A DNA stretch of 46,668 nt from Octopus bimaculoides (lineage: Eukaryota): positions 8,229,191 to 8,275,858 of the forward strand of contig NC_068982.1 in the NCBI RefSeq assembly GCF_001194135.2, in the 5' to 3' direction. Positions 549-38,872 of the stretch are shown here, piece by piece. The notes below the pieces were generated by a model. It did not search any database. It was not told where the DNA came from and saw only the letters and a program-made list of their open reading frames with translations. Position 1 is the stretch's first letter; every line of letters starts with the position of its first letter. The translations under genes and the position numbers were made by a program.

Positions 549-599
549 TGTCTGGCATGAAAGATTCATCGTTCATCGATTCTGACAGATCACACAACA
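549..599 (-). CDS. Unit A discoidin-like exon 1, partial (LCDLSESMNDESFMPD), runs into N gap
   Basis: Acceptor catttttcag; 49 of 51 nt match the start of exon 2449-2708 in register. Confidence 0.85.
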
Positions 600-720
600 C
601 TGAAAAATGAAAGAATTGCCTCTTAAATAATGGAAAATTAAGGTACAGTGTTAATCTGTTATATATAAGGGAAAGAAATGAATCGTCCGATTTAAGAAAA
701 ATTGTATGACTATTACTCAC

Positions 721-783
721 ATTGAAGAGGGGTTGATGGGCTTGGAAAAAGTTTTGAAGTTGCCATGGCAGTGGAAGCAGGTT
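721..783 (-). CDS. Unit A 63-nt S/T/P linker exon (QPASTAMATSKLFPSPSTPLQ)
   Basis: ataatgcag/gtgagt boundaries, phase 1-1, paralogous to 2830-2892 and 4836-4898. Confidence 0.85.
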
Positions 784-1581
784 CTGCATTATAAAATACG
801 CATCGGATGAAGGAAGTATAAAACGAACGACATCAGTTTATACGATTTATATTCAATATTTTTGATGCAAACGAGATACACATTTGAAGTGATATAAAGA
901 GAAAAATGAGCGACAAATAAATATTTGTTGATGTGAGAATTCAGAATTCCTGTTCAGATTTGAGAATCTAAAAGAATATTGTTTGAATTGGCGAAGTTCC
1001 TTGTTGATGATGAAATATTTGTATAAAATATATTGAAAATGCCATGTAGAGGGCATATGTGGACATCCGTCCTGTGAATGATGCACTGATATAGACAATT
1101 GTGATATGTAGAAGTGGAACCCTTAGAATTGAGGAACAAATTCTGTGGGGAATTGAGGTTGGGCTCTGTCAATATAATGAGATCTCAGTAACTCCCTAAG
1201 GGAATACATCTTAATGACACTTTTGGAAACATGAAAATTCTAGGTGCAACGATCGAGATAATTTTGTTTTTATGGTTGGGAAATGAACGTGAATTAAAAC
1301 TTTTCTCAACCTTAATATCATACAAACTTTTACGAATATTGTGGAAATGACAAATTGGTGTTGGTCATATCAATTCTTCAATGTAATTATTATATGCGCA
1401 AAAGATCTGACTATATAAATCGGTTTCCCTCAGTCATTGAAAAGGAATGCACCCGAAAAATTTGGCAACACCTAATAAGAAAGATTTAGAAAATTTCTGT
1501 GAGAGTAGTTTCAAATTGCTGAATGTGCAGCTTTTTTGAGAAACTTGTGTTAATTTTCTTTTGTAGTGATAGTTGTATATT

Positions 1582-1793
1582 CTTTTCTATTCGAGCACAA
1601 GGCCAGAAATTTTTGGAGTTGGGGTCAGTCGATTAGATCAAGCCCAGTACGCAACTGGTACTTAATTTATCGACCCCAAAAGGATGAAAGACTAAATCGA
1701 TCTCGACGGAATTTGAACTCAGAACGTAAAGACAGATGAAATACCGCTAAGCATTTCGTCCGGCATGCTAACATTTCTGCCAGATCGCCGCCT
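1582..1793 (-). mobile_element. tRNA-derived SINE, family 3 (head GGCGGCGAGCTGGCAGAA; body CCTTTCATCCTTT-GGGGTCGATAAATTAAGTACC)
   Basis: Matches copies at 14681-15404 and 22578-22768; degenerate 15-bp TSD TGATAGTTGTATATT / TGATGTTTGTATATT. Confidence 0.85.
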
Positions 1794-1899
1794 TATGATG
1801 TTTGTATATTGAATGAACAATCCGCGTTTGATCAGTACATTAGAAACAATATTAGGAAATTTTTATTTTTGGGGTACTAATATTTATAAGAAAACTCAC

Positions 1900-1968
1900 G
1901 TGGACTAGTTCTTTGTACACTCGATGGAAGTGGTGATGTGACTGTTGGCATTACTGTTGAGATAGGCT
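1900..1968 (-). CDS. 69-nt S/T/P linker exon (QPISTVMPTVTSPLPSSVQRTSP)
   Basis: attgcag/gtgagt, phase 1-1, paralogous to 3942-4010 and 5981-6049. Confidence 0.85.
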
Positions 1969-2115
1969 CTGCAATATAAAATGAAATGCAAAGCACACGA
2001 TAGAAAAAAAGAGCTGCATTTCGACGACATTGTTAATAAAATTCTCTCAGCTGGAGAATATAACTTGTTACAGATCATTGTGTTTTATTTCTAAATATGA
2101 ATCTGTAGTACGTAC

Positions 2116-2242
2116 GTTTACAGAGTTTTGCAGATACAGTTACTAACATGTCTTCATTTGGTTTCAATGGACGTAGTACAATTGTTACAGTTGTCTGTCC
2201 ATTGCCTTGTGGGATGTTAACCATTTTATCTGGACTGGACGT
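2116..2242 (-). CDS. Unit B discoidin-like exon 2 (TSSPDKMVNIPQGNGQTTVTIVLRPLKPNEDMLVTVSAKLCK)
   Basis: tttgttag/gtacgt, 127 nt, phase 0-1, paralogous to 6186-6312. Confidence 0.88.
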
Positions 2243-2448
2243 CTAACAAATGAAATGGATTTTATTACACTAAAACATAGTTCATACATGTTTCATGCAA
2301 ATGTTTCATTTATAAGTATCCACAGTTTCGATTAATCGAATAAATTATTGTCGAGTGAGTACAGCAATAGAATATATCTTTGAAACAATGAATAATAAGA
2401 TTTAAAACGTTCAGTGATTATAGCGAAAAAAGAACTACTTGTGTCTAC

Positions 2449-2708
2449 CTTGAATGTATTATTTGCAATAGGACTTGATAACAAAATGGTATACGTTTTC
2501 ACATTGACATGTTGAATAAGGCGAATTATAGCGCCAGCATCTAGATTTGGGCCAATATCTAACGTGATAAACCTCTCCCTTTTCGAATTAGTTATCCATC
2601 CAACATCTGGTCTGATGTCACCGGGATTGCCAACTGGTGGATTGAGAGAGATGGCTGTGTCTGGCATGAAAGATTCATCGTTCATCGATTCTGACAGATC
2701 ACACAACC
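2449..2708 (-). CDS. Unit B discoidin-like exon 1 (WLCDLSESMNDESFMPDTAISLNPPVGNPGDIRPDVGW...VKTYTILLSSPIANNTFK)
   Basis: ttggcag/gtagac, 260 nt, phase 1-0, inside ORF 2332..2898; paralogous to 6559-6818. Confidence 0.88.
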
Positions 2709-2829
2709 CTGCCAAATAAAAGAATTGCCTCTTAAATAATGGAAAATTAAGGTACAGTGTTAATCTGTTATATATAAGGGAAAGAAATGAATCGTCCGAT
2801 TTAAGAAAAATTGTATGAATATTACTCAC

Positions 2830-2892
2830 ATTGAAGAGGGGTTGATGGGCTTGGAAGAAGTTTTGAAGTTGCCGTGGCAGTGGAAGGAGGTT
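2830..2892 (-). CDS. Unit B 63-nt linker exon (QPPSTATATSKLLPSPSTPLQ)
   Basis: ataatgcag/gtgagt, phase 1-1. Confidence 0.85.
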
Positions 2893-3941
2893 CTGCATTA
2901 TAAAATACGCATCGGATGAAGGAAGTATAAAACGAACGACATCAGTTTATACGATTTATATTCAATATTTTTGATGCAATCTAGAGAGACATCGGCAGAG
3001 ATATAAAGAGGAAAGGTAGCGGCAAATAAAGATGCGTGGATATGGACGAAAATGTTATCGTTGTTTTATTTGTAGTAAGAAATGTAATATTGATAGAGAT
3101 ATCTTACATGAAATTCAAAGGAGTTTGCATAAAATACCTGTGCTAAGCAGAATACGGGAGAAAGGAATTACTTAAACATCAAAAGGATTCCGTTTAATGA
3201 GGTGATTAATTTTCAGACAAATTCAGTATATAAGGTAAGGTTTAGTGATTTTCTACAGATTGAGAATTAATAATCCATGTTTAGATGAAAACAACGAAAG
3301 CAATGTTGTTTGGAATAGTGAACGTCGTTTGGGATGTAGAAATATTTGTGTAAAATATTTTGGAAATGCTGTGTAGAGAGCATATGTGAACATGCGTACG
3401 ATGAACGATGCACCGATCTAGTAATGGTGCGAAGTAGCAGCTGCATTGTATGAAGATTTTGGTTGTCAGTTCAACAACGGGAAATGACAGTAACATCCTA
3501 ACAGAATGTAACCCAATAATATTGCTGAAAATATAACATTTACAGCAGTTCTGAAGGAAAAGTAAAATTTGAATTTTCTCAACCTTAGCATCTTACAAAA
3601 GATTGCGGTCATTGTGCAAAGGAGAAGCTGGTGTTGATCCGATTCATTGTTCAATGAAATTATTAATTGCTCAAAAGATCTGAGAACATGATTCTTTTTC
3701 TAATTGTCGTAAAAATACTTTGAGATTGATGAATTTAGCAATACTTGGTACTAAAGAGTGAGAAAAATCCGCGAGATTTGTGTTGTTGTTTATGAATGGT
3801 CAGTGGTTTTCTGAAAGAAAATTATTCTCCTTTGCATTGATTAATGTATATTGAATGAACATGCTGCGTTCGATTACCTCATAGGAATTATGTTTGGAAA
3901 ATAATATCTTTTAGTACAATTACGTATAGAATAAAACTCAC

Positions 3942-4010
3942 GTGGACGAGTAGTTGGTAGTGTTGATGCAGTTGCTGAAGTGACTGGTGCCGTTGTTGTT
4001 GAGATAGGGT
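3942..4010 (-). CDS. 69-nt linker exon (HPISTTTAPVTSATASTLPTTRP)
   Basis: attgcag/gtgagt, phase 1-1. Confidence 0.87.
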
Positions 4011-4146
4011 CTGCAATATTAAATGGAGTGCAAAATATTTGATAGATAGAATTACTTGAATTTCGATGAAATTATAAAGATATTGCATCCATTAGAAAAC
4101 GAAGTAAAGGCAATGAAAGATTGAAAGTTTCATGTAAACTACTTAC

Positions 4147-4224
4147 GTTTACAGAGTTTTGCAGAGAGAGATACCAACATATCTTGGGTTGGATCGGTTG
4201 GTAAAAGTTCAATTTGTACCACGG
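4147..4224 (-). CDS. Unit C discoidin-like exon 2, 3' part (VVQIELLPTDPTQDMLVSLSAKLCK); remainder and exon 1 presumed in gap 4225-4722
   Basis: Donor gtaagt; near-identical to 6186-6263; the acceptor-flank sequence of exon 1 reappears at 4723. Confidence 0.82.
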
Positions 4225-4835
4225 NNNNNNNNNNNNNNNNNNNNNNNNNNNNNNNNNNNNNNNNNNNNNNNNNNNNNNNNNNNNNNNNNNNNNNNNNNNN
4301 NNNNNNNNNNNNNNNNNNNNNNNNNNNNNNNNNNNNNNNNNNNNNNNNNNNNNNNNNNNNNNNNNNNNNNNNNNNNNNNNNNNNNNNNNNNNNNNNNNNN
4401 NNNNNNNNNNNNNNNNNNNNNNNNNNNNNNNNNNNNNNNNNNNNNNNNNNNNNNNNNNNNNNNNNNNNNNNNNNNNNNNNNNNNNNNNNNNNNNNNNNNN
4501 NNNNNNNNNNNNNNNNNNNNNNNNNNNNNNNNNNNNNNNNNNNNNNNNNNNNNNNNNNNNNNNNNNNNNNNNNNNNNNNNNNNNNNNNNNNNNNNNNNNN
4601 NNNNNNNNNNNNNNNNNNNNNNNNNNNNNNNNNNNNNNNNNNNNNNNNNNNNNNNNNNNNNNNNNNNNNNNNNNNNNNNNNNNNNNNNNNNNNNNNNNNN
4701 NNNNNNNNNNNNNNNNNNNNNNTAAAAGAATTGCCACTTAAATAATGGAAAATTAAGGTACAGTGTTAATCTGTTATATATAAGGGAAAGAAATGAATCG
4801 TCCGATTTAAGAAAAATTGTATGAATATTACTCAC

Positions 4836-4898
4836 ATTGAAGAGGGGTTGATGGGCTTGGAAGAAGTTTTGAAGTTGCCGTGGCAGTGGAAGGAGGTT
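4836..4898 (-). CDS. Unit C 63-nt linker exon (QPPSTATATSKLLPSPSTPLQ)
   Basis: Same sequence and boundaries as 2830-2892. Confidence 0.85.
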
Positions 4899-5980
4899 CT
4901 GCATTATAAAATACGCATCGGATGAAGGAAGTATAAAACGAACGACATCAGTTTATACGATTTATATTCAATATTTTTGATGCAATCTAGAGAGACATCG
5001 GCAGAGATATAAAGAGGAAAGGTAGCGGCAAATAAAGATGCGAGGATATGGACGAAAACGTTATCGTTGTTTTATTTGTAGTAAGAAATGTAATATTGAT
5101 AGAGATATCTTACCTGAAATTCAAAGGAGTTTGCATAAAATGCTTGTGTTAAGCAGAATAGGAGGGGAAGCGGTTACTTAAACATCAGAAGTATTCTGTT
5201 TAATGAGGTGCTTAATTTTAAGAAAAAGTATATAACGTTTGGTGTTATTCAATAGATTGCGAATTAATAATCCATGTTTAGATGAAGACAAGGAAAGAAA
5301 TGTTGTTTGGATAGGTGAAAGTCCTTTTGGATGAAGAAATATTTGTAAAATATTTTGGAAATGCTGTGTAGAGGGCACATTGTGATCATCCGTACGGTGA
5401 TCGGTGCTCCGATGTAGGCATTGTGAAAAATATCAGTGAAGCGATAAGAGTTGAATAAATTGACAGCTGAATTCTATGAGAATTTAGGCAGTCAGTTTAA
5501 CAAAAGTACTTCATAACAGAACTTAACGCAATAACATCGGCGGAAATATGAAATTTACAGCAGTTCTGAAGTAAATTCGCTTATTGTAATGTATAGGAAA
5601 GAAATGAAAATTTAGAATTTCGTCAACCGTAGCTTCTTACGAACGATTGCATCCATTGCATTGTGCAAAAGAGAAACTGATGTTGATCCAATTCATTGTT
5701 CAATGAAATTATTATATGTGCAAGAGACCTGATCAAATGATTTGCTTTCTAATTATCGTGAAAATAGATTGAGTCTGATCAATTTAGCAATACTTGATTG
5801 AGAAAAATCAGCGAGACCTCTGTTATTTTTTAGGAATATGCTGTATTTTTCTGAAAGAAATTATTCTGTTTTGCAGTGATTAATGTATATTGAATGAACA
5901 TGCTGCGTTCGATCACTTCATAGGAATTATGTTTGGAAAATAATATCTTTTAGTACAATTACGTATAGAATAAAACTCAC

Positions 5981-6049
5981 GTGGACGAGTAGTTGGTAGA
6001 GTTGATGCAGTTGCTGAAGTGACTGGTGCCGTTGTTGTTGAGATAGGGT
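5981..6049 (-). CDS. 69-nt linker exon (HPISTTTAPVTSATASTLPTTRP)
   Basis: attgcag/gtgagt, phase 1-1. Confidence 0.87.
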
Positions 6050-6185
6050 CTGCAATATTAAATGGAGTGCAAATTATTCGATAGATAGAATTACTTGAAT
6101 TTGGATGAAATTATAAAGATATTGCATCCATTAGAAAACGAAGTAAAGGCAATGAAAGATTGAAAGTTTCATGTAAACTACTTAC

Positions 6186-6312
6186 GTTTACAGAGTTTTG
6201 CAGAGAGAGATACCAACATATCTTGGGTTGGATCGATTGGAGAAAGCTCAATTTGTACCGTGGTTTGACCATTATGTTGTGGAATGGCAACTGGTCGATC
6301 TGGAGTTGATTC
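6186..6312 (-). CDS. Unit D discoidin-like exon 2 (ESTPDRPVAIPQHNGQTTVQIELSPIDPTQDMLVSLSAKLCK)
   Basis: tttattag/gtaagt, 127 nt, phase 0-1. Confidence 0.88.
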
Positions 6313-6558
6313 CTAATAAATGAAATGAAACCTTAAGCTGAAATAACCTCGATGAGTAGGAAAAGCGTGAAAATTATACAGTTCGTCTTTTTAAGGATTG
6401 AAAGTGCTCTATTATATCTACGGTTGAATATTATTCATGAATTTAGCAAAATATATCGATCGATTCAGTTAGGAAAAGTTTGGGCTTTGATACAGTGTAT
6501 TGAGTACTTCGACATGTTTCCGTGATTAGAATGAAAAAAAAGAGCCACTACTGAATAC

Positions 6559-6818
6559 CTGGATTTGTCTTTTTGCAGAAGGATGTGATATGAAAACTGT
6601 ATAGGACTTCACATTCTCGTGTCGAACAAGGCGAATTGAACCTCCAACATCTAAGTTGGGGCCAATATCTAATGTGATAATCCTTGTGTCATTCGTATTA
6701 GTTCTCCATCCAAAATCGGGTCTGATGTCACCGGGATTGCCAACTGACGGCTGGAGTGAGATGGCAGTGTCTGGGATGAAAGATTCATCGTTCATCGCTT
6801 CTAATTGATCACACAACC
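6559..6818 (-). CDS. Unit D discoidin-like exon 1 (WLCDQLEAMNDESFIPDTAISLQPSVGNPGDIRPDFGW...SAKRQIQ)
   Basis: tttgacag/gtattc, 260 nt, phase 1-0, inside ORF 6526..6834. Confidence 0.88.
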
Positions 6819-6933
6819 CTGTCAAATAAAGCAATTCTCATAGAATGGAAAATTAAGTTAAAGCGTAATTATGTTGTCTATGGTTAAGAAAGCAAGCGGT
6901 AGATATCCCTAAAACTGTGAACTTGTAACTCAC

Positions 6934-7002
6934 ATTGACTCGTCGTTGATATCCTTGAAAAGACTCCCGAAGTTACAGGTGCCATTGTAGTGCTTGTAGT
7001 TT
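6934..7002 (-). CDS. S/T linker exon (ETTSTTMAPVTSGVFSRISTTSQ)
   Basis: tatattgtag/gtgagt, 69 nt, phase 1-1. Confidence 0.82.
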
Positions 7003-7886: not shown

Positions 7887-7985
7887 CTGTAGCATAAGTT
7901 GGTCTCTGTGTGATGGTAGATATTGTGAAGACCAATCTTGTTGCTGGTTTTTGAACATTTGTTGAAACTTCTAGTGTACTGACTA
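7887..7985 (-). CDS. S/T-rich exon (VVSTLEVSTNVQKPATRLVFTISTITQRPTYAT)
   Basis: cttattcaacag/gtaagg, 99 nt, phase 1-1. Confidence 0.82.
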
Positions 7986-8704
7986 CTGTTGAATAAGATG
8001 GGATAACTGAAATGAAAATGAATACATTTGAAAAGTGATACAGAAATACCTCGCTTTACAGAAATAATGCGTTCCTGAAATATTCTGGTCGTAATGCAAT
8101 CCTAATGTGCAATTAATTTCCCTGCAGATTTTCGTGTTATCAAGTGAGATTACGTCCGTGCGTACGTTTTCGAAAAGACAAAACAGCATAAGAAATCAAC
8201 AGAGAACAAGCAACACAGTTACATTTATTCATGAAAATACTAATTTCTAAACACTCACAATATGACACATTGGGTTGGTGCATAATTACTGCAGCTTTTT
8301 CTCAACGAATTTTATTCAACAAAAACAATAACAACATGTAACAAAAACATCTTAAAATGATTATTCCGGAGCATATTCACCATCTACTTCAATTACTGCT
8401 TGGCAGACAGTCAACCCAATACATACATGAAGTACATACAATATAGATACATAAAAAACACGAAAACATTTCTAGAGGAATGTATTAGGAAATTAATTCG
8501 TTAGGTGACTCGGTACATTGTCTTCTTAAAAGTTTCAAACCAACCTTTTTAATTAGGAGGGATTTTAATTAGAAGTTTCACCTTATTTCTGCAAATCGGA
8601 AGATAAACTTTTGGCATTTTAAAAAATTATCATCATGTTTATCGGTACTTTACGCCGACCCATAACATTCAAGAGTCATTCCGTCTTAAGTGTTGCATTG
8701 TCAA

Positions 8705-9259: not shown

Positions 9260-9405
9260 CACAATCATGTTCATCAGATCCAGAAAAACAGTCCATATTT
9301 CCATCACATATCTTGGTTTTATTTATACAATGACCATCTTCGCATTGGAACTCGTCTTCATGGCATTTACAGGTATCACATGTCATGTTTCCACTTTTAC
9401 AAGTG
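9260..9405 (-). CDS. vWC-like end + LDL-receptor class A repeat (CTCKSGNMTCDTCKCHEDEFQCEDGHCINKTKICDGNMDCFSGSDEHDC)
   Basis: tttttatag/gtagga, 146 nt, phase 2-1; canonical LDLa Cys and acidic pattern. Confidence 0.93.
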
Positions 9406-9960: not shown

Positions 9961-10001
9961 GACTGATAAATGATATGATTGAGATAAGGTTAAAAACTTA
10001 C

Positions 10002-10098
10002 CAATTTTTGCAAGAAGCTACGAAAATTTTAGTTCCTGATGGATACAGTTTTCCTTCATATAAACAAGGGCAACTTTCTTCAGGAATACATTTTCCTC
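10002..10098 (-). CDS. TIL end / vWC-like exon (GGKCIPEESCPCLYEGKLYPSGTKIFVASCKN)
   Basis: aactgcag/gtaagt, 97 nt, phase 1-2. Confidence 0.92.
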
Positions 10099-10277
10099 CT
10101 GCAGTTTGAATAAAATACCATTACAAAATATTGCTAAAACACATCATCATTGTAAGTGCACATTTATATACGTGACTATGTTTGCATGCAAACATATAAG
10201 TATATTCAGGTGACAAAATAAATGTTATATGAATATATTTGGTGACGCAAAGAGGGAAATTAAAACTCAATACGTGA

Positions 10278-10318
<41 letters not shown>

Positions 10319-21943: not shown

Positions 21944-22072
21944 CCGTGCTGGATTTAGGACAAATGAGGTCCTGTGCTAATTAAGTTATGAGGCCCCTTG
22001 CTTGGACAGAGCCCCGTTGACCAGGGGCCCTGTGCTTAAGCACACTTCAGCCCAATGGTAAACCTGGCACTG
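21944..22072. mobile_element. Short MITE with degenerate TIRs
   Basis: GTGCTGGATTTA ... TAAACCTGGCACTG with a GGGGCCC core. Confidence 0.5.
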
Positions 22073-22332
22073 CCTCCACCAGACCAAATCTTCTTTTGTC
22101 TCTCCCATCATTCTTTGACCTTTCCAATACTTCACATAAAGGAACCTCTCTCTGTACTATTCTCCTTCTCAGGTGTGGGATTTTGGGGTTTTGTATTACA
22201 AGTGACTTCACTAGTGTATACGTATATGAATACACACACACACACACACACTCACACACACTTTACACAGTGGAAATTGTTTTCGACTATGAATTTAAAA
22301 TAAGATTAGGCTTAAAGTGTTTCAAATCTCAC

Positions 22333-22385
22333 CTGGGCAACTATCTGTTTTTCTTTCATCTTTCCATACTCCATTGGTACATGTT
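22333..22385 (-). CDS. vWC-like end exon (TCTNGVWKDERKTDSCP)
   Basis: cttttgcag/gtgaga, 53 nt, phase 2-1. Confidence 0.87.
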
Positions 22386-22577
22386 CTGCAAAAGTAACAT
22401 TTTCATGGCATCAAAATATTTTGAAAGATATAGATCAAACTGGAATCTTTTTCAGTCACTGCCATGGTTCTGAACTTAAATTTTGCTGATGGAAGTAAAA
22501 CAGTTTATTCAGGCAAATAAAAAAAAAAGAGTTTAACAATGAAAATAGCTTAAAGCTTTCATTATCTTGTTCTTAAT

Positions 22578-22768
22578 AAGGGGCGATCTGGCAGAATCGT
22601 TAGCACGCCAGACGAAGCGCTTATCGGTATTTCGTCTGTCTTTACGTTCTGAGATCAAATTCTGCCGAGGTCGACTTTACCTTTCATCCTTTTCGGGTCG
22701 ATAAATATATAATTGATTGCCCCCCCCCCTCCCTCCAAAATTTCGGGCCTTGGGCCTAGAACAGAAAT
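22578..22768 (+). mobile_element. SINE family 3, near full length
   Basis: Head plus body; 18-bp TSD CATTATCTTGTTCTTAAT / CATTATCATGTTCCTAAT. Confidence 0.85.
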
Positions 22769-22804
22769 CATTATCATGTTCCTAATGATCTATGAATTTT
22801 TTTT

Positions 22805-23009
22805 ATATTCTTTTACTTATTTCAGTCGTTTGACTGTGGCCATGCTGGATCACCATCTTTAGTCAAACAAATCGACTCCAGGACTTATTCTTTGTAAGCC
22901 TAGTACTAATCTATCGGTCTCTTTTGCCGAACTGCTAAGTTACAGGGATGTAAATACACCAACATCAGTTGTCAAGTGATGGTGGAGGGACAAACACAAG
23001 CATACAAAT

Positions 23010-23062
<53 letters not shown>

Positions 23063-23228
23063 CGATGGGCTTCTTTCAGTTTCCGTCTACCAAATTGACT
23101 CAAAAGGCTTTGGTCAGTCTGAGGCTATATTAGAAGACACTTGCTCAAGGTGTCACTCAGTGGGACTGAACTCGGAACCATGTAGTTGGGAAGCAAGCTT
23201 CTTACCACACAGCCACTCCTGCACCTAT
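22805..23228 (-). mobile_element. SINE family 1
   Basis: Family consensus, internal (CA)n. Confidence 0.85.
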
Positions 23229-23289
23229 AGTGCCTGTATTTTTTTCAACTCATTAAAAGTTTAGGTAAAGTTTAGGCGCATTAAAAGCT

Positions 23290-23455
23290 TAGGTGCAGCA
23301 GTGGCTGTGTGGTAAGTAGCTTGCTTATCAACCACATGGTTCCGGGTTCAGTCCCACTATGTGGTACCTTGGGCAAGTGTCTTCTACTTTAGCCTCGGGC
23401 CGACCAAAGCCTTGTGAGTGTATTTGGTAGATGGAAACTGAAAGAAGCCTGTCAT
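23290..23455 (+). mobile_element. SINE family 1, 5' half
   Basis: AGGTGCAGCAGTGGCTGTGTGGTAAG...GGAAACTGAAAGAAGCC. Confidence 0.85.
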
Positions 23456-23484
23456 ATATATATATATATTTACGTACGTATATA

Positions 23485-23648
23485 TAGGCACAGGAGTGGC
23501 CGTGTGGTAAGTAACTTACTTACTAACCACCTGATTCTGGGTTCAGTCCTACAGCATGGCATCTTGGGCAAATGTCTTCTACTTTAGCCTTGGGCTGACC
23601 AAAGCTTTGTGCGTGGATTTGATAGATGGAAACTGAAAGAAGTTCACC

Positions 23649-23693
<45 letters not shown>

Positions 23694-23912
23694 TGTGTAT
23701 GTTTGTGAATCTGTGTTTGTCCCCCCCAACATGGCTTGACAACCGATGCTGGTGTGTTCACGTCCCTGTAACTTAGCGGTTCGACAAAAGAGACCAATAG
23801 AATAAGTACTAGGCTTACAAAGAATAAGTCCTGGGTTCAATTTGTTCGAATAAAGGTGGTGCTCCAGCATGGCCGTAGTCAAATGACTGAAACAAGTAAA
23901 AGAGTAAAAGGA
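23485..23912 (+). mobile_element. SINE family 1
   Basis: Family consensus, internal (GT)n, tail AAACAAGTAAAAGAG. Confidence 0.85.
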
Positions 23913-24391
23913 TATCAAAATACCTAACTTATACATAAGGATCTTACATAAAATTATCACAGAAAATTTTAATTCGACCATGGACATAGTGTTTTCAAAT
24001 TTTGGCACAAGGCCAGCAATTTTGGCCTTCTTGCTAATCACAAATAACAACCACAGTAAAACAGCCAGCGTGCTCACCCAGAGACCCCCAAACTCTGGGT
24101 GAGACTTGGGACAGCACTTATAAAACAAAACAAAAACAATGTAAACAATTATAATAATTATTATTATAATAAAACTCTTAGTTCTTGCTTCTCCTGAAAT
24201 GACTAAATGACAATCATAGTCGATGACCAATAACAATTTGACAAGAAGCAGCTTTATGAAATGTAATGTCTACCAGGAATTTTTGTTAATTTTAATTCTA
24301 CTACTTGCTTTGCTATCTTAACACAACATACGTTTTCTTATAATGCGTAGACATCATCAAACGGAATGTGATGATTATGTTAAATACTTAC

Positions 24392-24483
24392 AGATCACTA
24401 CAGCCAATTTTCAGCTTGCTCCTTGCAATCATCCACGTATCTCCATATTGGCATGGACAGTCCTCAGGTGGGACACAAGTTCC
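24392..24483 (-). CDS. TIL' end / vWC-like exon (GTCVPPEDCPCQYGDTWMIARSKLKIGCSD)
   Basis: aaaatag/gtaagt, 92 nt, phase 0-2. Confidence 0.9.
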
Positions 24484-25057
24484 CTATTTTTGGATGAAAA
24501 ATAATTTTTATACAATACAAAGAAAAACAACTTAAAAAACAAATGAGTGTAAGATCATTATAGTTAATTTATGATAATCTTTAAACTATCTTTAGTAATA
24601 AAACAAACTGTTATAGCCTACACTATTGAATCAGCAACACAAATCTGTGAGCCTAAGTGAAATACAAATGAAAATCATTCAAAAACCATCAAAATATAAA
24701 ATGGAATATTTTAGGATTATTTTATTATACTTTCTTTTCAATAATTAGCTATAATTAAATATTAATGTTAATAAGATATGACTACATTAATTGATATTGA
24801 AACGATTACATCAGCCAACAAAATAAAATTTATATGGTCACTAAAAACGCTAAACTAACTGTAACCAATTCTCCTTCAAACCACATACTATTGGCTTTTT
24901 TTTTTTAAAGTGACATTGGAAAGTTTGGTCCCAGAAACAAAAGACTGGATAGATATTGCTAGAATGATTAGTGCTGAGCTGGTCTGAAACAACAACAATA
25001 ATAAAAACAACTTTTTATTTGTAGTAAAGATTGTTTGCCAACATAACATGGCAGTCC

Positions 25058-25231
25058 TGGTTTATGACGAATGTTGCTGTAATTTAGCCCCCAGAGACAT
25101 CGTCTCCAGCTGGCTATACGACATGATCTGTGTCCTTATATTTTTGAACAAGGGAATCTAGCACCCCCACTCAGCTCGAAACAATATCTGTGTATCACGA
25201 TTTCTGGGTTACTTCCCTTCATCAGCACAGA
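25058..25231 (-). mobile_element. PLE-type terminal-repeat fragment carrying a hammerhead motif
   Basis: Homologous to 15770-15880; contains CTGATGAAGG...GAAA as in PLE termini. Confidence 0.6.
25187..25231 (-). ncRNA. Minimal type I hammerhead ribozyme motif, core boxes intact
   Basis: TCTGTG-CTGATGA-A-GGG-AAGTAA-CCC-A-GAAA-TCGTGAT-A-CACAGA. Confidence 0.68.
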
Positions 25232-25347
25232 ATAATATTGTCAAATAAGGTAGTCTTTCTTAAGTAAAATTCATAGTTTACCATGAAGTATATAAGACAG
25301 TATGTTTGAAATAAATTGATCTTAATTGGTAAAAGACAAAATCTTAC

Positions 25348-25543
25348 ATTTGGGGAAAGAACTAAATACTTAGGACATCGACAACCTTCAAATTCATTTT
25401 CAAAAACCATGCATTCTTCAGGTTTGGATAAAGTTGAGCAAGTTTCTTGGCATCCAGTTGCATTTGTAATCCATATTTGGTTTCTTGGACAAATAACTTC
25501 TTCAAGTGTTGGCACACACTTCCATTTTCCTCGAATGCAAGTA
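25348..25543 (-). CDS. vWC-like end + TIL' exon (CTCIRGKWKCVPTLEEVICPRNQIWITNATGCQETC...GCRCPKYLVLSPN)
   Basis: tcttgcag/gtaaga, 196 nt, phase 2-0. Confidence 0.93.
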
Positions 25544-26955
25544 CTGCAAGAAATAATTAACAGAGGAAGGATATTTCTTAGTTGTGTTAATTGGTAAACA
25601 TGAGTTGCAGAAAAGAAACAAAAAAAAATAAAGGAAAACAATACCACCAAATAGTTTTCATTTTCAATTTTCTTAATCGTTGGAATCAAACAAACATCAC
25701 CTCATTTAAAGCAACCTCCTAATTCTTGGGTGCCTTCAGCAGAGTTTGTACCAATATAAGCACTTAGACCAGACAGTCTGTTTCAGAAAACGGCAATTCT
25801 AGTGCTTTTTCATTCAGTTATAGTTTCACAGAGTTTCAAGGCTTTCTGAGGAAGAGTTTGCCAGCAGATAATGTAGGGTCTCTGTTAGCCAAATTATAAT
25901 CATGTAATTATGCAGAAAGCACTGGATTTATATAAGTTCATTCAAGATAATAGTGTGGCAACTAAAATACACAAGAGGACTGCTAGAAATAACAGCTTGT
26001 TCTTCCATTAATCATACACTAAAGTTTAAAAAAGACACATTTAATGTGATGTAGGTTCCCTACACACAGGGAAAAAGACAGAGTGATCATGGCTGGAATA
26101 CTTTTGGTTAGGGGTCTGCTGAGCCAAGGCTGTTCGGAATCTAAATAATGACAACAACACAACCCATTCACTCATTGGTTCATTTCCATTTATCTCTCTT
26201 TCAATAAGTATATTTTTTACTGCAAAACTATCTCAATATTTTACTAGATTGAATAAGAAAAGGTTCACTCAATATTTCTTCCATTTTATGCTTAATATTC
26301 ATGAACTCAGACCAGCACCGACCTTACTTTTCTTTCATGAGACAAAGCTGTCTTAATCTTTAAACTAGTCTATCGCTGCTATCGTTTCATCATCCTTCTC
26401 AAGTTAGTTTCTATATTTATTCAGAATAATTTTCTCTTCAATTCATCTCTCTCATTTGGTCATTAGCAGCAAAGATCTCCAAGAATTTTTAATAAGCCTC
26501 TCTCTGCCTACCTCTTAGATCTTTTGCTATTACATTTGAACCTCTTTGAGAACCAAAAATCGTTTTAATGTCAAAATGTATTGTGGAACCCTGTTTCAAC
26601 TTACTTGTTCACATCTTCCCATCAATCACTTCCAATCTTCCTAAAATCAAATTCCTTTTCCTGAAGGTGAAATACTATCCCTATCCCAGACCAGTCTCTG
26701 TTTCTATCTTACCCCTAAGCCCAGTCTTTACCTCGTCCTAATAATTTCTGGTCTCTCTTGCTATCTGAATTCTGCCTAATAAAAGAAACCTACAACACAT
26801 TAACTAAAAACAACATTCACATGTTTGCAAACATGTGGGTAACTGGTGGAAGCTACCATAAATCCAAACAAATTATTCTTGACAGCAAATGTGTTTCATC
26901 ATTGATGCATCCAAATCAGCAATGCAGATGATAAAAAAAGTCCCCTCTTACTAGG

Positions 26956-27153
26956 CAGTGGTGGACTGGTCAGGTTGCCTTCTTGCCCAATGGCAAGTGG
27001 GCTCCTGCGCCATTAGAATCCATATATGGGGGCTCATGTTAGTATCTAGGGGGCCTGTCCCCTCAAGTTTGAGAATTTTTTACTCACTCCTAGAAGAATG
27101 CTTTAATTATTTCAGCCTGGCTGTGTTTGCAGACAGTTGAAAAGAATACATTT

Positions 27154-27204
<51 letters not shown>

Positions 27205-27276
27205 AATGTATTGTAGTTTCAGGTGGGCCCCTTTAGTCTCCTGGCAACCAATATTTTTAGACCCAGTCTGCCACTG
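26956..27276. mobile_element. hAT-type MITE containing a ~45-nt A run
   Basis: TIRs CAGTGGTGGACTGG / CCAGTCTGCCACTG; 8-bp TSD TTACTAGG / TTACAAGG. Confidence 0.8.
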
Positions 27277-28049
27277 TTACAAGGTGTGTTTCCCAATTCC
27301 CTTTACATGACCAAAACCCACTATCAACAAGACCACAAAGGTTTCACATGAATCTATTCTGTACTTGTACTAGAAGAGAAAATTTATTAAAATTTACTGC
27401 GACCATCTGGAATTATTCAGTTTACATGAGAAAACATCCAGATGACTAACAGAAAAAAAAAAGCAATGGTTGCCCTTTATGCATCGCACTCCTTGCTAAC
27501 ACTCTCACTTCCCAAATGGCTGTTTAACTTCCTGTTTTTTTTTTCAAAAACGTCTTTGCTGCCTTGAAGAATTCTATAATTTGTTTTTCCCAAATAAGCA
27601 TGTAGAAAATATCCACACATTTGTTTCCTACTTTAAGCATTACTCTGAAGGCATCCAGCTAAAATCCTTCCTAAATCACTTCCCCAAACATATTTGTTTT
27701 GCTACTTGCACCTCTAAGCAAAGTCACTGATAACCACCAAACTGATTATGCTATTCCTTCTAATATCCTTAAAGTGCTTCTCTCAAAAGACCAATTCTGA
27801 AATGTATTTGGAAATTATATCTTGTGAAATGCATCACAATGTATCATTGCTCAGGGTACTTAACCCTTTATGACTGTTTTTTTTCAAATGGCCACAATGA
27901 TGTTATATTTCAGTGCACTACACAAGGAATCGCTGTTCTCCATTAGCACTGATAGGTCCTCAGTTTCATATGGTATGTCTTTATCAACAGTGTCTACGTA
28001 TTTGAGAGAATTTCATCCTCCATTAAGGTGCTGAAGTTTCAAAAATGTT

Positions 28050-28500
28050 TAAAAAATCAGCAATTCTTATGGCATGCAGTTCAGAATGAGATCATTGGCA
28101 GTCAAAGCCTATGCTGCACTGTGCACCAATAGCAGAGGAAGGTAGAATGTGGCCATAGATTGCCACTTTGGACTTTACTCCTGCCATGAAATGCTTTATG
28201 CTCTCATGGCATGGAATGCCATTGGGGCAATCATAAAGTTCCTTCTTTAGAGTCCAGGTTCTGGTGTCATAGAAAAGAATGCTCTCTACATATGGCCTAA
28301 AGAATATCAGCTTTTGTGATTCTGAAATACTTGATTATCAGACCTGTTGACCTTTGTTGGAGGTGCTTGAAGCTTGTTCCATGCATGTCAAGAAGTCTTT
28401 CTTGTTGTTAGTAGAATAGGATCCAAGGTACTTGAAGTCACTGGCCTCATTGAGTTGTGTACCATTATTAGAGTAAATGAGCAATGCTGTACACTAATAC
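28050..28500 (-). mobile_element. Decayed RTE-clade LINE ORF2 fragment
   Basis: Translates piecewise as DFKYLGS...KDF...KLIFFRPYVESILFYDTRTWTLKK, with stops and frameshifts. Confidence 0.7.
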
Positions 28501-28736
28501 ATGCTAACAGTTAATCAGATTGTTCCAACAATGGCAAATTAGAAGCATGTATTGCAGTACATTGCTATTAGATGTAAAAGACGGCAAAATATATTTTCTT
28601 CTTTCACAACTGCAATCAAATTAATTATTCTTAAAGCATATGAAATAAATAAATGAATAAATTTTGTAACACTCCAGCGACAGCCTTAGAACAACATCAT
28701 CAAGATAATAAGAATAATAGAACCATTCAGACATAC

Positions 28737-28989
28737 CAATCGAGTTGTCTCCTATGGATCACTTCTCCAGCTTTGTAGTGTTTCTGTTCAAATTTATTGA
28801 AGCATGTACATTTATCGATTGCTACACAATTTCTCCGATTATCCAACAATGTTCCATTGGGACAACGACATCCAAATATGCATCCTTCTTCGCATTGCAT
28901 TCCCTCTTTGGAAAGATCATTACAAGAAGATTGGCATGAAGATCCACAATATGTATACTTTTGACCACTTCCAGAAGGACACTTTACAA
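28737..28989 (-). CDS. TIL2 + vWC-like exon (VVKCPSGSGQKYTYCGSSCQSSC...GCIFGCRCPNG...QLD)
   Basis: ttgacaatag/gtatgt, 253 nt, phase 1-2. Confidence 0.94.
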
Positions 28990-29354
28990 CTATTGTCAAA
29001 ATAGAATAAATTTCTTGTTAACAATACACAATATATGTTTTACTGAAGTATATTGAAATAGTTACATAAGTTATATTAGTTTCACTAATTCATAGACAGA
29101 TCATACTTTCATTCATCATTTTTTTTACTTCTATTTCTATTAATATTTCCAAGAGGTTTCTGCAGGTTCTATTTCTAATTTATTAATTTTCCCAGAAAAA
29201 GAATAAAGAAATTTTCATTTTTAAATAAAGAAATAACATAATACTGCTTTACTCAGAGCTTTGTTTTCCTGTTCAATAATTGACAAGAATTAATTCCAAG
29301 CATTAATGTTCTTCAATACAATCTCTGTTATTAATATTTTATAAATCATTCTTT

Positions 29355-29558
29355 TATCTTCTATCTTTTACTTGGTCCAGTCATTAGATTGCGGCCAAGC
29401 TGGGGCACTGCATTAAAGAATTTTAGTTGAATGAATGGAGTCTAGTACTTATTTTTTTAAAGCCCAGTACTTAATCTATCAGTCTCTCTGGCTGAACTGC
29501 TAAGTTAATGGAACATAAACACACCAGCATCAGTTGTCAAGCAGTGGTGGAGAACAAA

Positions 29559-29602
<44 letters not shown>

Positions 29603-29609
29603 CACACAC

Positions 29610-29640
<31 letters not shown>
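29355..29640 (-). mobile_element. SINE family 1, 3' half
   Basis: Family consensus followed by (CA)n. Confidence 0.7.
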
Positions 29641-29907
29641 TAGTATAAAAGGGATAAATTATCCTGGTGGATACTGTGTTATCTCACAAATTGACAGAGA
29701 TGGCAGTGGAGGTTTATTCACATCCAAAACTCTTCTTATTAAAAAGTTTCATGCTGCATATATAACCCTAACCCTACATAAGTTTCGACTGTGTTGAAGC
29801 GTATGTAGGTTAGTGTTATATATGCTGTAGAAAACATTTTAATAGAAATGTTTTGGATGTGAATAAATCTCCACTCTCCTCTTTGTTATTAATTATATAT
29901 ATATATA

Positions 29908-30260
29908 TCATCATCATCACCATTGTTTAACGTCCGCTTTCCATGCTGGCATGGGTTGGATGGTTTGACTGAGAGCTGGAGAACCAGATGGCTACACCAG
30001 CCTCCAATCTGATCTGGATATATCACGTTGGGGTTATAATATTTTTATTGATGCCAGAGCCACTTGACTGGCTCCTGTGCTGTTGGCACGTAAAAAGCAC
30101 CCACTATACTCTTGGTGTGGTTGGCATTAGGAAGGGCGTCCATCTGTTGAAACATTGCCACATCAGATTGGAGCCTGGTGCAGCCACTGGCTTTCCAGAC
30201 CTCAGTCAAACTGTCCAACCCATGCCAGCATGGAAAACAGAATTTAAACGATGATGATGA
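29908..30260. mobile_element. Foldback-like element (family 4) with ~100-bp inverted arms and (CAT)n/(ATG)n ends
   Basis: 29908-30013 is the imperfect reverse complement of 30161-30260. Confidence 0.8.
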
Positions 30261-30374
30261 TATACATACATACATATATACATATATGTATATCATCATC
30301 ATATATACATACATTCATATATATGATATATATATACATACATTTATGTATATATATATATATAGATATATATA

Positions 30375-30540
30375 TATGATTGGGTTCTTTCAGCTTCTGT
30401 CTAGCAAAACCACTCAAGGCTTTGGTCAGCCAGAGGCTATAGTGATAGACACTTGTCCAAAGTGTCACATAGTGGGACTGAGTCCAGAACCATGCTGTTG
30501 GGAAGCAATCTTCTTACCGTATAGCCCAACCTGCGCCTAT
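30375..30540 (-). mobile_element. SINE family 1, 5' half
   Basis: Family consensus. Confidence 0.75.
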
Positions 30541-30701
30541 ATTAATTGTATTTGTGTTTGATCTACACGAATTTTTGTAATACATAACATAAATTATTAA
30601 ATATTTCTTGCTTTTGAGAATAAAATTATCGATAAAGGATAAGCAAAGATATGAATGTTTGCTACCAAATTCTTCACTCATACAAAAAATATTATACTTA
30701 C

Positions 30702-30939
30702 CGCATAAATTATTAAGAGTCCTGTTTGATCGCCAGTCCACTATTATTTTGTTATCAGCACATTCTTTTGTATAGGATTGCATGGCAGTACAAAATCCTT
30801 TTGAACTGAATACTTCACTTGCGCATATATCTCTCATGCATAAATCATAATATGGTTTGATTGCAACTGTATCACGACATTGCAAAAATACAGGGCTTTC
30901 TTGAAGGTAGCTACAATATTGCTTGGCAGTTACTAGGTT
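30702..30939 (-). CDS. C8 domain of D2 (NLVTAKQYCSYLQESPVFLQCRDTVAIKPYYDLCMRDIC...VDWRSNRTLNNLC)
   Basis: tatttctag/gtaagt, 238 nt, phase 0-1. Confidence 0.93.
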
Positions 30940-31146
30940 CTAGAAATATATGTTAACAGTTTTTGATTAATAATAAGAAACCTGCATAAATCATTTTAAA
31001 ATGTTGCTATTTAAAAAACAAAATCATCTTTGATATGACTTCTGTAATCATAAATGCTATGAGAAAGATAATAGGGAAATAATGGGAATGACATCAATGT
31101 GTTTAGCAATTGATTGTATGCATTGTTTGAATGTATGTATATTACT

Positions 31147-31583
31147 GGCACCCGTGCCAGTGGAGCGCTAACAGCACCATCTGAGTGGGATCACTGCCAG
31201 AGCAGTCGTCTCGCTCCCATGCCGGTGGCATGTAAAATGCACCATTTGAGCGTGATCGTTTCCAGCTTCGCCTTACTGGCACTTGTGCCAGTGACATGTG
31301 AACAAAATATTGGACTGACTCCTGTGCAGGTGGCACATAAAAAAACACCATTTTGAGCGTGGCTGTTGCCACTATCGCTGGACTGGCCCTCATGCTGGTG
31401 GCACATAAAAAACACCCATTATACTCTCAGAGTGGTTGGCGTTAGGAAGGGCATCCAGCTGTAGAAATTCTGCCAAATCGGATTGGAGTCTGGTGTAGCC
31501 ATCCACTTTGCCAGTCCCCAGTCAAATCGTCCAACCCATTCTAGCATAGAAAGCAGACGTTAAATGATGAAGATGATGATGAT
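31147..31583. mobile_element. Family 4 element with internal sub-repeats, one terminal arm
   Basis: GGTGGCACATAAAAAACACC repeated; ends GCAGACGTTAAATGATGAAGATGATG. Confidence 0.7.
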
Positions 31584-31787
31584 TACAAAATGAAAACTGT
31601 TCAATTGTTGAGCAAAGATATATAATAGTAAGGTGTTGTTAATCATATTGGTAAGCTCTTATGAATGAAGCTTAAATTTTTGTAATGAACGGAATCTAAA
31701 AGGAAGATATGGGTACTTATTCTCAAAGATGAAAGTAATATTTTAAAATGACGAGGAGATTTTAAAAATGATGGAAATGATGCTTAC

Positions 31788-31955
31788 ATCAACATATACT
31801 GAACAGGGTTCTATTTCAATGTCTTCTCTTTGATCAGCGAAGCATGAAGATGCCAGGAACTCCTGAGTAAACTTAGTTTTGTGTAAAGATAATCCATTAA
31901 GGCCAACAAATTCATTATTTATATTAGAATCAAAATTTCCACAGAGACCTTGAAC
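31788..31955 (-). CDS. vWD2 C-terminal exon (VQGLCGNFDSNINNEFVGLNG...EPCSVYVD)
   Basis: cttaatctag/gtaagc, 168 nt, phase 0-0; not in the supplied ORF track. Confidence 0.93.
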
Positions 31956-32264
31956 CTAGATTAAGATTAAAAAAAAAAAACATACGAATATAAAACTCAT
32001 GAGATTATATATTAGAATACATTCAGGTGGAAAAGATAAGAACATGAAAACATTAACTGGTAATGAAAACAACATAACATGGATATCCATAACATGGATA
32101 AGAGGGATATTTTAGTTCTATACAAACATTTAGAACATTCTATGAGTTTACAAGCATTTCCCCTTTTGATATTGAGACCAAAATTTCATGAAATGTAGAC
32201 ATGAAATATCAAAAAGGGCTTGCATAAAAAAACAAAACAAAACAAACTATTGACAAAAATTAGG

Positions 32265-32415
32265 CATAGCTCTGTGTTTGGCAAGCTTCCTTCCGAACTA
32301 TGAAATCTTGGGTTCAGTCCTACTGTGTGGTACTGTGAACAAGTGTCTTCTACAAAGCCCTAGGCTGATCAAAGCCTTGTAAGTGAATTTGGTAGATGGA
32401 AACTGAAAGAAGCAG
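32265..32415 (+). mobile_element. SINE family 1, 5' half
   Basis: Family consensus. Confidence 0.7.
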
Positions 32416-32974
32416 ACAAAACCCAACAAGGCAGAAATATTCATCCAACATTCTCACTATTGCTGTTGGAGGATCCTCATCCATTACTCATATAATTATG
32501 TGTTTTTAAACACATTGTATCCATGAAATATATTATTCTTGGATGAATACCACAGTTAATTTGCCTTTCACGATGTATGTGTATTAAGTATGATACACAG
32601 ATGGCTATTTTAATCTAATACTGCTTCTGTGGCATATAAAAAATAAAAAAAAACAGAAAAATAATAGCATAAACCACAAGACATGAAACATATTCTTAAC
32701 CTTGATACTTATTGGTAAAACATTTTATATCTAGCTATAACACACTTGACTCACACAAATTATCCTCTTCATATTATGATAAAGATACAAAGATGATGTT
32801 AAATACAAACTTGTTACCAGTTCTAGAATTTATTACTTTAATTTTGAAAAAGGCTTATACCCAAGGTTTTTTGCATGGCTTAAGAAACCAGACAGATTGA
32901 TTCATTAACATTCCTTTCAAGCTATTGCAAGTTGGTGGCTGGAAGAAAGACATATGTAGAGAGGGGATTCTCAT

Positions 32975-33093
32975 GGTTCCAGGTTCATTCCCACTGCGTG
33001 GCACCTTGGGCAAGTGTCTTCTACTATAGCCTCGGGCCTACCAAAACCTTGTGAATGGATTTGGTAGACAGAAACTGAAAGAAGCCCGTCGTA

Positions 33094-33126
<33 letters not shown>

Positions 33127-33235
33127 NNNNNNNNNNNNNNNNNNNNNNNNNNNNNNNNNNNNNNNNNNATTGTTGTACTTGGGGATTGTCATATTGCCAG
33201 TTTATATATATATATATGTATATATATGTGTGTGT

Positions 33236-33282
<47 letters not shown>

Positions 33283-33515
33283 TGTGTATGTGTATATGTT
33301 TGTGTGTCTGTGTTTGTCCCCCCAACATCGCTTGACAACCGATGCTGGTGTGTTTACGTCCACCATAACTTAGCGGTTCGGCAAAAGAGACTGAGAGAAT
33401 AAGTACTAGGCATCCAAAGAATAAGTCCTGGGGTCGATTTGCTCGACTAAAGGCGGTGCTCCAGCAAGCATGACCACAGTCAAATGACTGAAACAAGTAA
33501 AAGAGTAAAAGAGTA
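32975..33515 (+). mobile_element. SINE family 1 with gap in its microsatellite
   Basis: Family consensus on both sides of the gap. Confidence 0.8.
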
Positions 33516-33576
33516 AATGAATATAGAAATCTGCAATAAATGGATTATTTGCTAGAACTATATTGTGTTTTCTTAC

Positions 33577-38035: not shown

Positions 38036-38080
38036 GGTTAGACAGTTTAACTGGGACTGTTAAACCAGAGAGCCATACCA

Positions 38081-38774: not shown

Positions 38775-38872
<98 letters not shown>

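Follow-up and report, generated by a model that had tools for sequence, protein, structure and literature searches.

A tandemly duplicated four-exon cassette for a diverged discoidin-like domain in a VWD-C8-TIL glycoprotein gene of Octopus bimaculoides

The cassette array and the gene that carries it

The window analysed here comprises 46,668 nucleotides (nt) of the Octopus bimaculoides genome (RefSeq assembly GCF_001194135.2, contig NC_068982.1, positions 8,229,191 to 8,275,858). Its minus strand holds part of a large gene in which a four-exon cassette, encoding short serine-, threonine- and proline-rich (S/T/P) linkers and a compact discoidin-like domain, is repeated in tandem after a series of exons for VWD, C8 and TIL domains and a single LDL-receptor class A (LDLa) exon. 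The array and its upstream exons all lie on the minus strand, and coordinates are given as positions within the window. The cassette exons measure, in order, 69, 63, 260 and 127 nt, which together make 519 nt or 173 residues with phase 1 at both ends. They are arranged as follows, beginning with unit 1.

6934..7002, minus strand: B-type linker exon of unit 1 (69 nt), ETTSTTMAPVTSGVFSRISTTSQ
6559..6818, minus strand: 260-nt exon of unit 1, encoding the discoidin-like domain's N-terminal two thirds (family profile E 1.2e-35)
6186..6312, minus strand: 127-nt exon of unit 1, encoding the remaining C-terminal third, with the end SAKLCK
5981..6049, minus strand: unit 2 linker exon A, 69 nt
4836..4898, minus strand: unit 2 linker exon B, 63 nt
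4225..4722: assembly gap, expected to contain the unit 2 260-nt exon, the intron and 49 nt from the start of the 127-nt exon
4147..4224, minus strand: final 78 nt of the unit 2 127-nt exon, VVQIELLPTDPTQDMLVSLSAKLCK
3942..4010, minus strand: unit 3 linker exon A, 69 nt
2830..2892, minus strand: unit 3 linker exon B, 63 nt
2449..2708, minus strand: unit 3 260-nt domain exon (family profile E 6e-32)
2116..2242, minus strand: unit 3 127-nt domain exon
1900..1968, minus strand: unit 4 linker exon A, 69 nt
721..783, minus strand: unit 4 linker exon B, 63 nt
549..599, minus strand: start of the unit 4 260-nt exon (51 nt), LLCDLSESMNDESFMPD, truncated by the gap at 449-548

A cassette of this kind, with four exons, 173 residues, phase 1 ends and a period of 2.0-2.1 kb, had been proposed from an earlier inspection of the sequence, and the exons, splice sites, reading frame and repeat spacing all agree with it. 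Direct-repeat analysis gave families spaced 2006-2109 nt apart; a period above 500 nt put the array out of reach of Tandem Repeats Finder. Every visible splice site in the array is AG/GT, as illustrated by the borders of exon 3942-4010 (cag/ACCCT...CCAC/gtgagt). Spliced unit 3, each exon of which is bounded AG...GT, yields one open frame of 173 residues that reads H-PISTTTAPVTSATASTLPTTRP-QPPSTATATSKLLPSPSTPLQ-W, followed by the 128-residue domain LCDLSESMNDESFMPDTAISLNPPVGNPGDIRPDVGWITNSKRERFITLDIGPNLDAGAIIRLIQHVNVKTYTILLSSPIANNTFK/TSSPDKMVNIPQGNGQTTVTIVLRPLKPNEDMLVTVSAKLCK, where the slash marks the exon junction. The linkers are 23-44 residues long and 57-64% Pro, Thr or Ser, with 12-19 Ser/Thr each. 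The 69- and 63-nt exons are phase-symmetric singly and the 260- and 127-nt exons only jointly; because of this phase 1 symmetry, units can be gained, lost or skipped without a break in the frame. The array grew by tandem duplication of a genomic cassette of ~2 kb.

The pattern of divergence is that of coding sequence under constraint. Between units 1 and 3 the exons are 79-87% identical versus 46-69% for the introns, and the ratio of nonsynonymous to synonymous substitution (dN/dS) among domain copies is 0.44-0.54. The same two-exon domain is also present at other loci and in other species.

The cassette was originally predicted to occur at least four times. Four units are indeed represented, but only units 1 and 3 hold a complete domain, and a family profile search of the whole window found two complete 260-nt exons, both on the minus strand. 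Unit 1 (6186-7002) consists of three exons, one B-type 69-nt linker exon followed by the two domain exons. In unit 2 the linker exons are both present, as is the tail of the 127-nt exon, the 260-nt exon falling in the gap at 4225-4722; in unit 4 the two linker exons are followed by 51 nt of a 260-nt exon, up to the gap at 449-548.

The flanks of the gap at 4225-4722 are compatible with a single uninterrupted in-frame unit, and judged from the sequence such continuity is plausible. The counterparts of position 4224 in units 3 and 1 are 2193 and 6263, those of position 4723 are 2717 and 6823, and one missing unit segment is predicted to measure 523-559 nt, against the 498 N in the gap. The stub at 4147-4224 is in the codon phase expected from the homologous 127-nt exon, and the spliced frames are open on either side of the gap (284 residues upstream, 261 downstream). 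Unit 2 has a mosaic make-up, with 100% identity between 4723-5022 and 2717-3016 in unit 3, 97-100% identity between 4011-4224 and 6050-6263 in unit 1, and only ~80% identity in adjacent intron sequence. Either gene conversion between units or repeat-driven mis-scaffolding could account for this. Since a 100%-identical repeat abuts the gap, and since a mosaic of this sort breaks short-read assemblies, additional units may have been collapsed there. Double assembly of a single sequence was rejected as the source of units 2 and 3, as their long introns differ by ~20%.

The gene extends past the low-coordinate end of the window, and the array is the start of its central repeat region. Positions 1-448, beyond the 100-N gap at 449-548, probably belong to another contig, with the continuation of the array missing. 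As a separate observation, the plus strand of this segment carries an open frame, rich in GC, whose motifs resemble those of retroelement reverse transcriptases (FLPKIHKPNNPGRPIVS...); it gave no Pfam match at E ≤ 0.01.

Upstream of the array, Pfam searches of the minus-strand open frames placed the following features.

10001..39642, minus strand: C8 and TIL of D1; VWD-C8-TIL of D2; TIL of D'; VWD-C8-TIL-E of D3
37239-37505, minus strand: TIL
34545-28730, minus strand: VWD, C8, TIL
25225-25701, minus strand: single TIL without other domains
18506-12714, minus strand: VWD, C8, TIL (VWD E 4.9e-35)
9260..9405, minus strand: single LDLa exon, 146 nt, phase 2 in and phase 1 out (Pfam Ldl_recept_a E 2.2e-10)
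7887..8006, minus strand: S/T-rich exon before the array, 120 nt, 40 residues, phase 1 to 1 (AG/GT borders; its frame joins those of the LDLa exon and unit 1)

The order is thus the end of D1, then D2, D' and D3, then one LDLa. The exons between 10001 and 39642 include two VWD matches (E 4.9e-35 and 8e-10); D1 is seen in part, as C8 and TIL, its VWD lying outside the resolved stretch. This is the N-terminal D1-D2-D'-D3 series of VWD-C8-TIL units that marks gel-forming mucins, and the single Ldl_recept_a exon at 9260-9405 adds the SCO-spondin-like feature of an LDLa after the VWD units. Reading frames run unbroken from the LDLa exon through the 120-nt exon into unit 1, and the phases all agree. 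Together with the Pfam hits, these continuous frames confirm the expectation that the array follows D3 and a single LDLa.

The assembly gap of 954 N at 10879-11832 could in principle conceal D3 exons or a second LDLa. The second LDLa is disfavoured because a gap-free orthologous contig (L002) has one LDLa only. Other gaps in the window are at 9682-9749, 14975-15243, 33127-33168, 33931-34147, 40179-40438 and 45056-45456, and most of the window gaps, the 954-N gap counted among them, border (TA)n, (CA)n or (TATG)-type microsatellites, as is typical of short-read scaffolds.

A predicted, shortened discoidin-like fold

The domain encoded by the 260- and 127-nt exons is compact, at 128 residues, and has one Cys near each end (Cys2 and Cys127). 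In the family alignment Cys2 is kept wherever the exon start is present, and Cys127 is kept in full-length copies that reach the C-terminus. Both lie at the positions of the terminal cysteines of factor V/VIII type C (F5/8C, or discoidin) domains, and the two may be joined by a disulfide. The motifs GW, ITLDIG, VKTYTILLS, VTIVLRP and SAKLC, which had been singled out along with the one Cys at each end, are all found in unit 3.

An AlphaFold2 model of the window domain, built from a 25-sequence alignment, was all-beta, with a predicted local distance difference test (pLDDT) score of 88.4 and a predicted template modelling (pTM) score of 0.83; the AlphaFold model of a 35%-identical paralogue (P0011) had a pLDDT of 89.0. 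When the window-domain model was compared with the Protein Data Bank (PDB) by Foldseek, the top matches were the b1 domains of neuropilin-1 and -2, the C2 domains of factor VIII (FVIII) and lactadherin, the CASPR2 discoidin domain, CBM32 and IFT25, with E 2.6e-4 to 2e-3 and TM-scores of 0.5-0.64 on the query. The P0011 model matched the DDR2 DS domain, neuropilin b1b2, IFT25 and FVIII, as well as APC10, CBM16, F-type lectins and the Eph ligand-binding domain (LBD), and FVIII C1 was also among the matches of the models. Both models therefore resemble solved discoidin domains in having a jelly-roll beta-sandwich, a resemblance that other galactose-binding-like families share.

An hhalign comparison with six genuine F5/8C domains taken from the PDB search output aligned 78 columns collinearly from the N-terminal Cys (probability only 7%, P 0.005), bringing into register the motifs C..GM, I.D..I, R, GW, I.vDlG and VK.y.v. 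The score of 22.6 exceeded those of all 200 column-shuffled decoys (mean 11.7, sd 2.4, max 18.8) and of the reversed decoy (11.6).

The original prediction had called the domain discoidin-like and proposed structure prediction as its test. The best PDB matches of the models were discoidin or galactose-binding-like domains and not an unrelated fold, and this, with the hhalign score above all decoys, supports the description at the level of fold; it is not supported by Pfam, in which F5_F8_type_C matches none of the 25 family members. On the models, the predicted fold can be placed firmly in the galactose-binding-like jelly-roll superfamily, and F5/8C appears to be its best single family match. 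The module is probably, though not provably, a remote homologue of discoidin domains. Within the discoidin/galactose-binding-like fold the domain is a strongly diverged and shortened member, seen so far only in cephalopod-type sequences. 'Pizza' designer propellers were rejected as relatives, their score being due only to six repeated 22-residue matches.

Relatives of the module and of the gene

A full HMMER scan of 1.84 billion representative proteins recovered 24 proteins, nearly all of them single-exon fragments, and those that are named all come from Octopus. The named homologues are RefSeq models of O. bimaculoides and O. sinensis, in which the domain is likewise built from these two exons. 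One sequence from a marine metatranscriptome (P0009) is spliced and spans the 260/127 junction at the same residue. A 1226-residue bacterial match (P0025), an FN3-like protein of repetitive sequence that aligned over 'PDTAI..GP', was discarded as spurious. Very few proteins came out of word-indexed homology searches, and no annotated full-length protein for this locus, so the gene cannot be named by orthology.

At the DNA level the closest relative is a contig 82% identical to the window (L003); O. bimaculoides contig LGKD02103269.1 (L001) is 70-76% identical. On the latter contig, at ~3015-3077, a B-type linker exon has an AT donor in place of GT, with the acceptor and frame intact, and RefSeq model LOC128251500 skips it; linker exons can therefore drop out without loss of frame. 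Another gap-free contig (L004) has three domain copies, 4.2 kb apart. The gap-free orthologue that argued against a second LDLa, L002, comes from a more distant species and is collinear with the window: D3 and the single LDLa are followed by an exon of the 260-nt type that is 40% identical to the window's. The 127-nt exon of this first module was not found within the 1.5 kb covered, because a transposon fragment intervenes; the intron after the first module exon contains, at 19500-19750, a transposase-like fragment (…TNGHTTVGRTTKTYNDQLCADTVCCLEDLPRSMMRD…).

A second O. bimaculoides locus (L005; CM046602.1:7748395-7779607, including 4.7 kb of N) is a paralogue of the window gene, with 35% identity in the domain. 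It has three copies of the module and a Pro-, Thr- and Ser-rich (PTS) region, and is covered by three RefSeq models on one strand. The upstream model comprises TIL, VWD, C8, TIL and LDLa and ends in the 260-nt exon of the first module; the middle model (XP_052821907, 'uncharacterized') combines the module with ~150 residues of PTS; and the downstream model consists of TSP1/TSP1_spondin/TIL repeats. The locus looks like one SCO-spondin-like gene split over three models, and its arrangement points to SCO-spondin-like relatives as much as to MUC5.

The VWD-C8-TIL family includes gel-forming mucins, hemolectin/hemocytin and SCO-spondin, each of which shares part of its plan with the octopus gene. 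MUC2, MUC5AC and MUC5B likewise begin with D1-D2-D'-D3 and continue with glycosylated PTS alternating with small disulfide-containing globular domains, a repeat architecture prone to copy-number change. On the other hand, the globular domain in these mucins is CysD, with ten Cys and WxxW, whereas the octopus module has two Cys and a jelly-roll, is without WxxW and gave no Pfam match to CysD (Mucin2_WxxW). Their PTS runs to hundreds of residues versus tens in octopus, and is encoded by one giant exon, in contrast to an octopus unit spread over four small exons. F5/8C domains (neuropilin b1, FV/FVIII C2, lactadherin C2, DDR DS, CBM32) share with the module the predicted fold, a Cys at both termini and the collinear motifs C-x-GM, I-D--I, R, GW, I-vDlG and VK-y-v; the module is ~25 residues shorter and has no significant sequence match to them.

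Hemolectin and lophotrochozoan mucin-like proteins have a comparable plan. In hemolectin the third VWD unit is followed by F5_F8 domains, which also typify the lophotrochozoan mucin-like proteins; some insects have very small PTS beside these domains, and it is into this same region that CysD domains were inserted (Lang et al. 2016, PMC4948705). Like these proteins, which are secreted and of protostome lineage, the octopus gene has three N-terminal D assemblies, then discoidin-fold domains, with small adjoining PTS; Pfam architecture and Foldseek put the module in the hemolectin-type position, as defined in PMC4948705, at the level of fold only. A discoidin domain after D3 is thus the expected protostome condition and no substitute for CysD. 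The suggestion that the module fills the CysD role accordingly reduces to an analogy, and the module is more likely a diverged and multiplied descendant of F5/8C than a CysD replacement. It differs from hemolectin's in being 128 residues long, invisible to Pfam and present in at least four copies as a 2 kb exon cassette, and the array differs in its interleaved S/T/P linkers and in having an LDLa ahead of it.

Two further features were also seen in introns of the gene. Dispersed short repeats resembling short interspersed elements (SINEs), 73-87% identical, occupy several introns, one lying within the long intron of unit 4; the sets are 1560-1810, 14680-14974 and 22576-22706; 7430-7770 and 36399-36581; and 8690-8900 and 36215-36379. 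ARAGORN found no tRNA-like head in them, and no tRNAs. On the plus strand at 19824-20493, within an intron and adjoining a long (CA)n tract, are two overlapping open frames of 144-165 residues, one of which has the pattern FKQRFRNHQSSF...WKIIE...CKICI, reminiscent of a repeat-derived open frame.

Competing readings and significance

We consider it likely that the region encodes a large secreted VWD-C8-TIL glycoprotein in which S/T/P linkers alternate with a diverged discoidin-like domain, on a cassette that multiplied in tandem, and that the product is a cross-linking polymer. In the mechanism we envisage, the short linkers (23-44 residues) would presumably be O-glycosylated, and on secretion the N-terminal D assemblies would polymerise the protein via disulfides, as in mucins and von Willebrand factor. 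Stiff glycosylated stalks would then hold the discoidin-like knobs apart, and the knobs could bind multivalently to glycans, lipid, matrix or one another, which would cross-link a gel of a mucus, adhesive or clot-like kind. Carbohydrate binding specifically seems possible, if on balance doubtful; discoidin domains also bind lipid, collagen or peptides. Octopus skin-mucus proteomes include SCO-spondin-like and VWFD proteins (PMC11431876), and a limpet adhesive protein unites VWD, C8, TIL and LDLa (PMC7333891); both are circumstantial evidence for a role in mucus or adhesion.

Several results weigh against this interpretation. With regard to the domain, neither the window copies nor any other of the 25 family members had a Pfam match at E ≤ 10, to F5_F8_type_C or otherwise, and phmmer and hmmsearch against PDB sequences returned only chance or low-complexity matches and no discoidin. 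Foldseek E-values for the two models were modest (3e-4 to 1e-2, with TM-scores of 0.5-0.64), a viral structure library yielded only generic jelly-rolls that scored similarly, and the hhalign probability was only 7%. Placement in the superfamily is firmer than placement in F5/8C proper, given that the P0011 model also matches APC10, CBM16 and F-type lectins. With regard to the gene, gaps interrupt two of the four units, the exon model at this locus is predicted from splice sites, frames and conservation, and the linkers are short for a mucin. We infer polymerisation and the gene subfamily with the C-terminus of the gene lying beyond the window, and binding by the knobs by analogy with the families involved.

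Shortness of the linkers also bears on the name of the gene. The gene had been labelled mucin-like, with short S/T/P linkers alternating with the domain, which they do; the long central PTS of gel-forming mucins was not found within the window, where S/T/P stretches are only 23-44 residues, though longer PTS may lie further downstream, and the label is only loosely apt. The window gene could be mucin-like, hemolectin-like (3+2 VWD) or SCO-spondin-like. A SCO-spondin-like or hemolectin-like paralogue acting in fibres, clots or adhesives, in which the array would be followed by TSP1/TIL or two more VWD units and not by a long PTS, is quite possible, although we lean slightly against it. An LDLa straight after D3 is a SCO-spondin trait (PMC4948705), the limpet adhesive protein provides a similar combination of domains (PMC7333891), and the L005 paralogue joins VWD/C8/TIL/LDLa and three modules to TSP1/TSP1_spondin/TIL on one strand. 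SCO-spondin and the octopus genes both have VWD units followed by LDLa, the L005 paralogue going on into TSP1/TIL repeats. Against this, the downstream part of the window gene lies beyond the window, and L005 also bears ~150 residues of PTS. SCO-spondin itself reportedly carries an F5/8C domain; the window gene differs in having no TSP1 exon visible in the window and several discoidin-like modules with PTS linkers in place of one canonical F5/8C. Adoption of this alternative would alter the subfamily name and not the structure described.

A different origin for the module is unlikely, namely that it is a lineage-specific jelly-roll not derived from F5/8C, from another or a new galactose-binding-like family, serving as a protease-resistant, non-glycosylated spacer or a homotypic cross-link like CysD and not as a lectin. 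The want of a Pfam match in all 25 members and the 7% hhalign probability speak for such an origin, as do the matches of the P0011 model to APC10, CBM16, F-type lectins and the Eph LBD, the TM-scores of only 0.5-0.64 and a length ~25 residues below that of F5/8C. However, F5/8C proteins dominate the top of both Foldseek lists, the collinear hhalign alignment outscores all 200 decoys, F5/8C domains have the terminal Cys pair too, and the module occupies the position of F5/8C in hemolectin and lophotrochozoan mucin-like proteins (PMC4948705).

That the array is non-functional, made of decaying pseudo-exons or in part an artefact of mis-scaffolded near-identical repeats, is very improbable: two gaps do cut the array, unit 2 is a mosaic of units 3 and 1, no annotated protein was found for this locus and one linker exon in the related contig L001 has no donor site, but every visible exon is open and bordered by canonical splice sites, dN/dS lies under 1, and with ~20% divergence in the middle of their long intron units 2 and 3 are distinct copies. 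The same domain also occurs as an array in gap-free L004, as a single copy in gap-free L002, and in RefSeq models as well as the metatranscriptome.

That invertebrate mucin-like proteins can have discoidin domains after D3 was already known, and the octopus gene is a lineage-specific variant of that arrangement; with the principle already in the literature, the surprise to specialists will be moderate. What is new is the divergence that makes the domain invisible to Pfam, its shortening and its apparent restriction to cephalopods, together with the way it has multiplied, on a phase-symmetric cassette of four exons and 2 kb and with S/T/P linkers in between. Small phase-symmetric exons can accordingly give a protostome VWD glycoprotein a mucin-like beads-on-a-string region, instead of one giant PTS exon. 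A bolder proposal, which we regard as rather unlikely, is that an unclassified, cephalopod-restricted 'mini-discoidin' is the knot domain of mucus or adhesive polymers, a glycan-binding analogue of CysD with a variable number of units. If that were true, gain and loss of phase-symmetric cassettes among individuals or species would tune the properties of gels or adhesives, for instance in skin, suckers or egg coats. Because the domain family is missed by current libraries, octopus gene models that contain it are fragmented and labelled 'uncharacterized'. A Pfam-style model of the module would better annotate cephalopod mucus, adhesive and extracellular-matrix genes, and would supply octopus-mucus proteomics with a named target.

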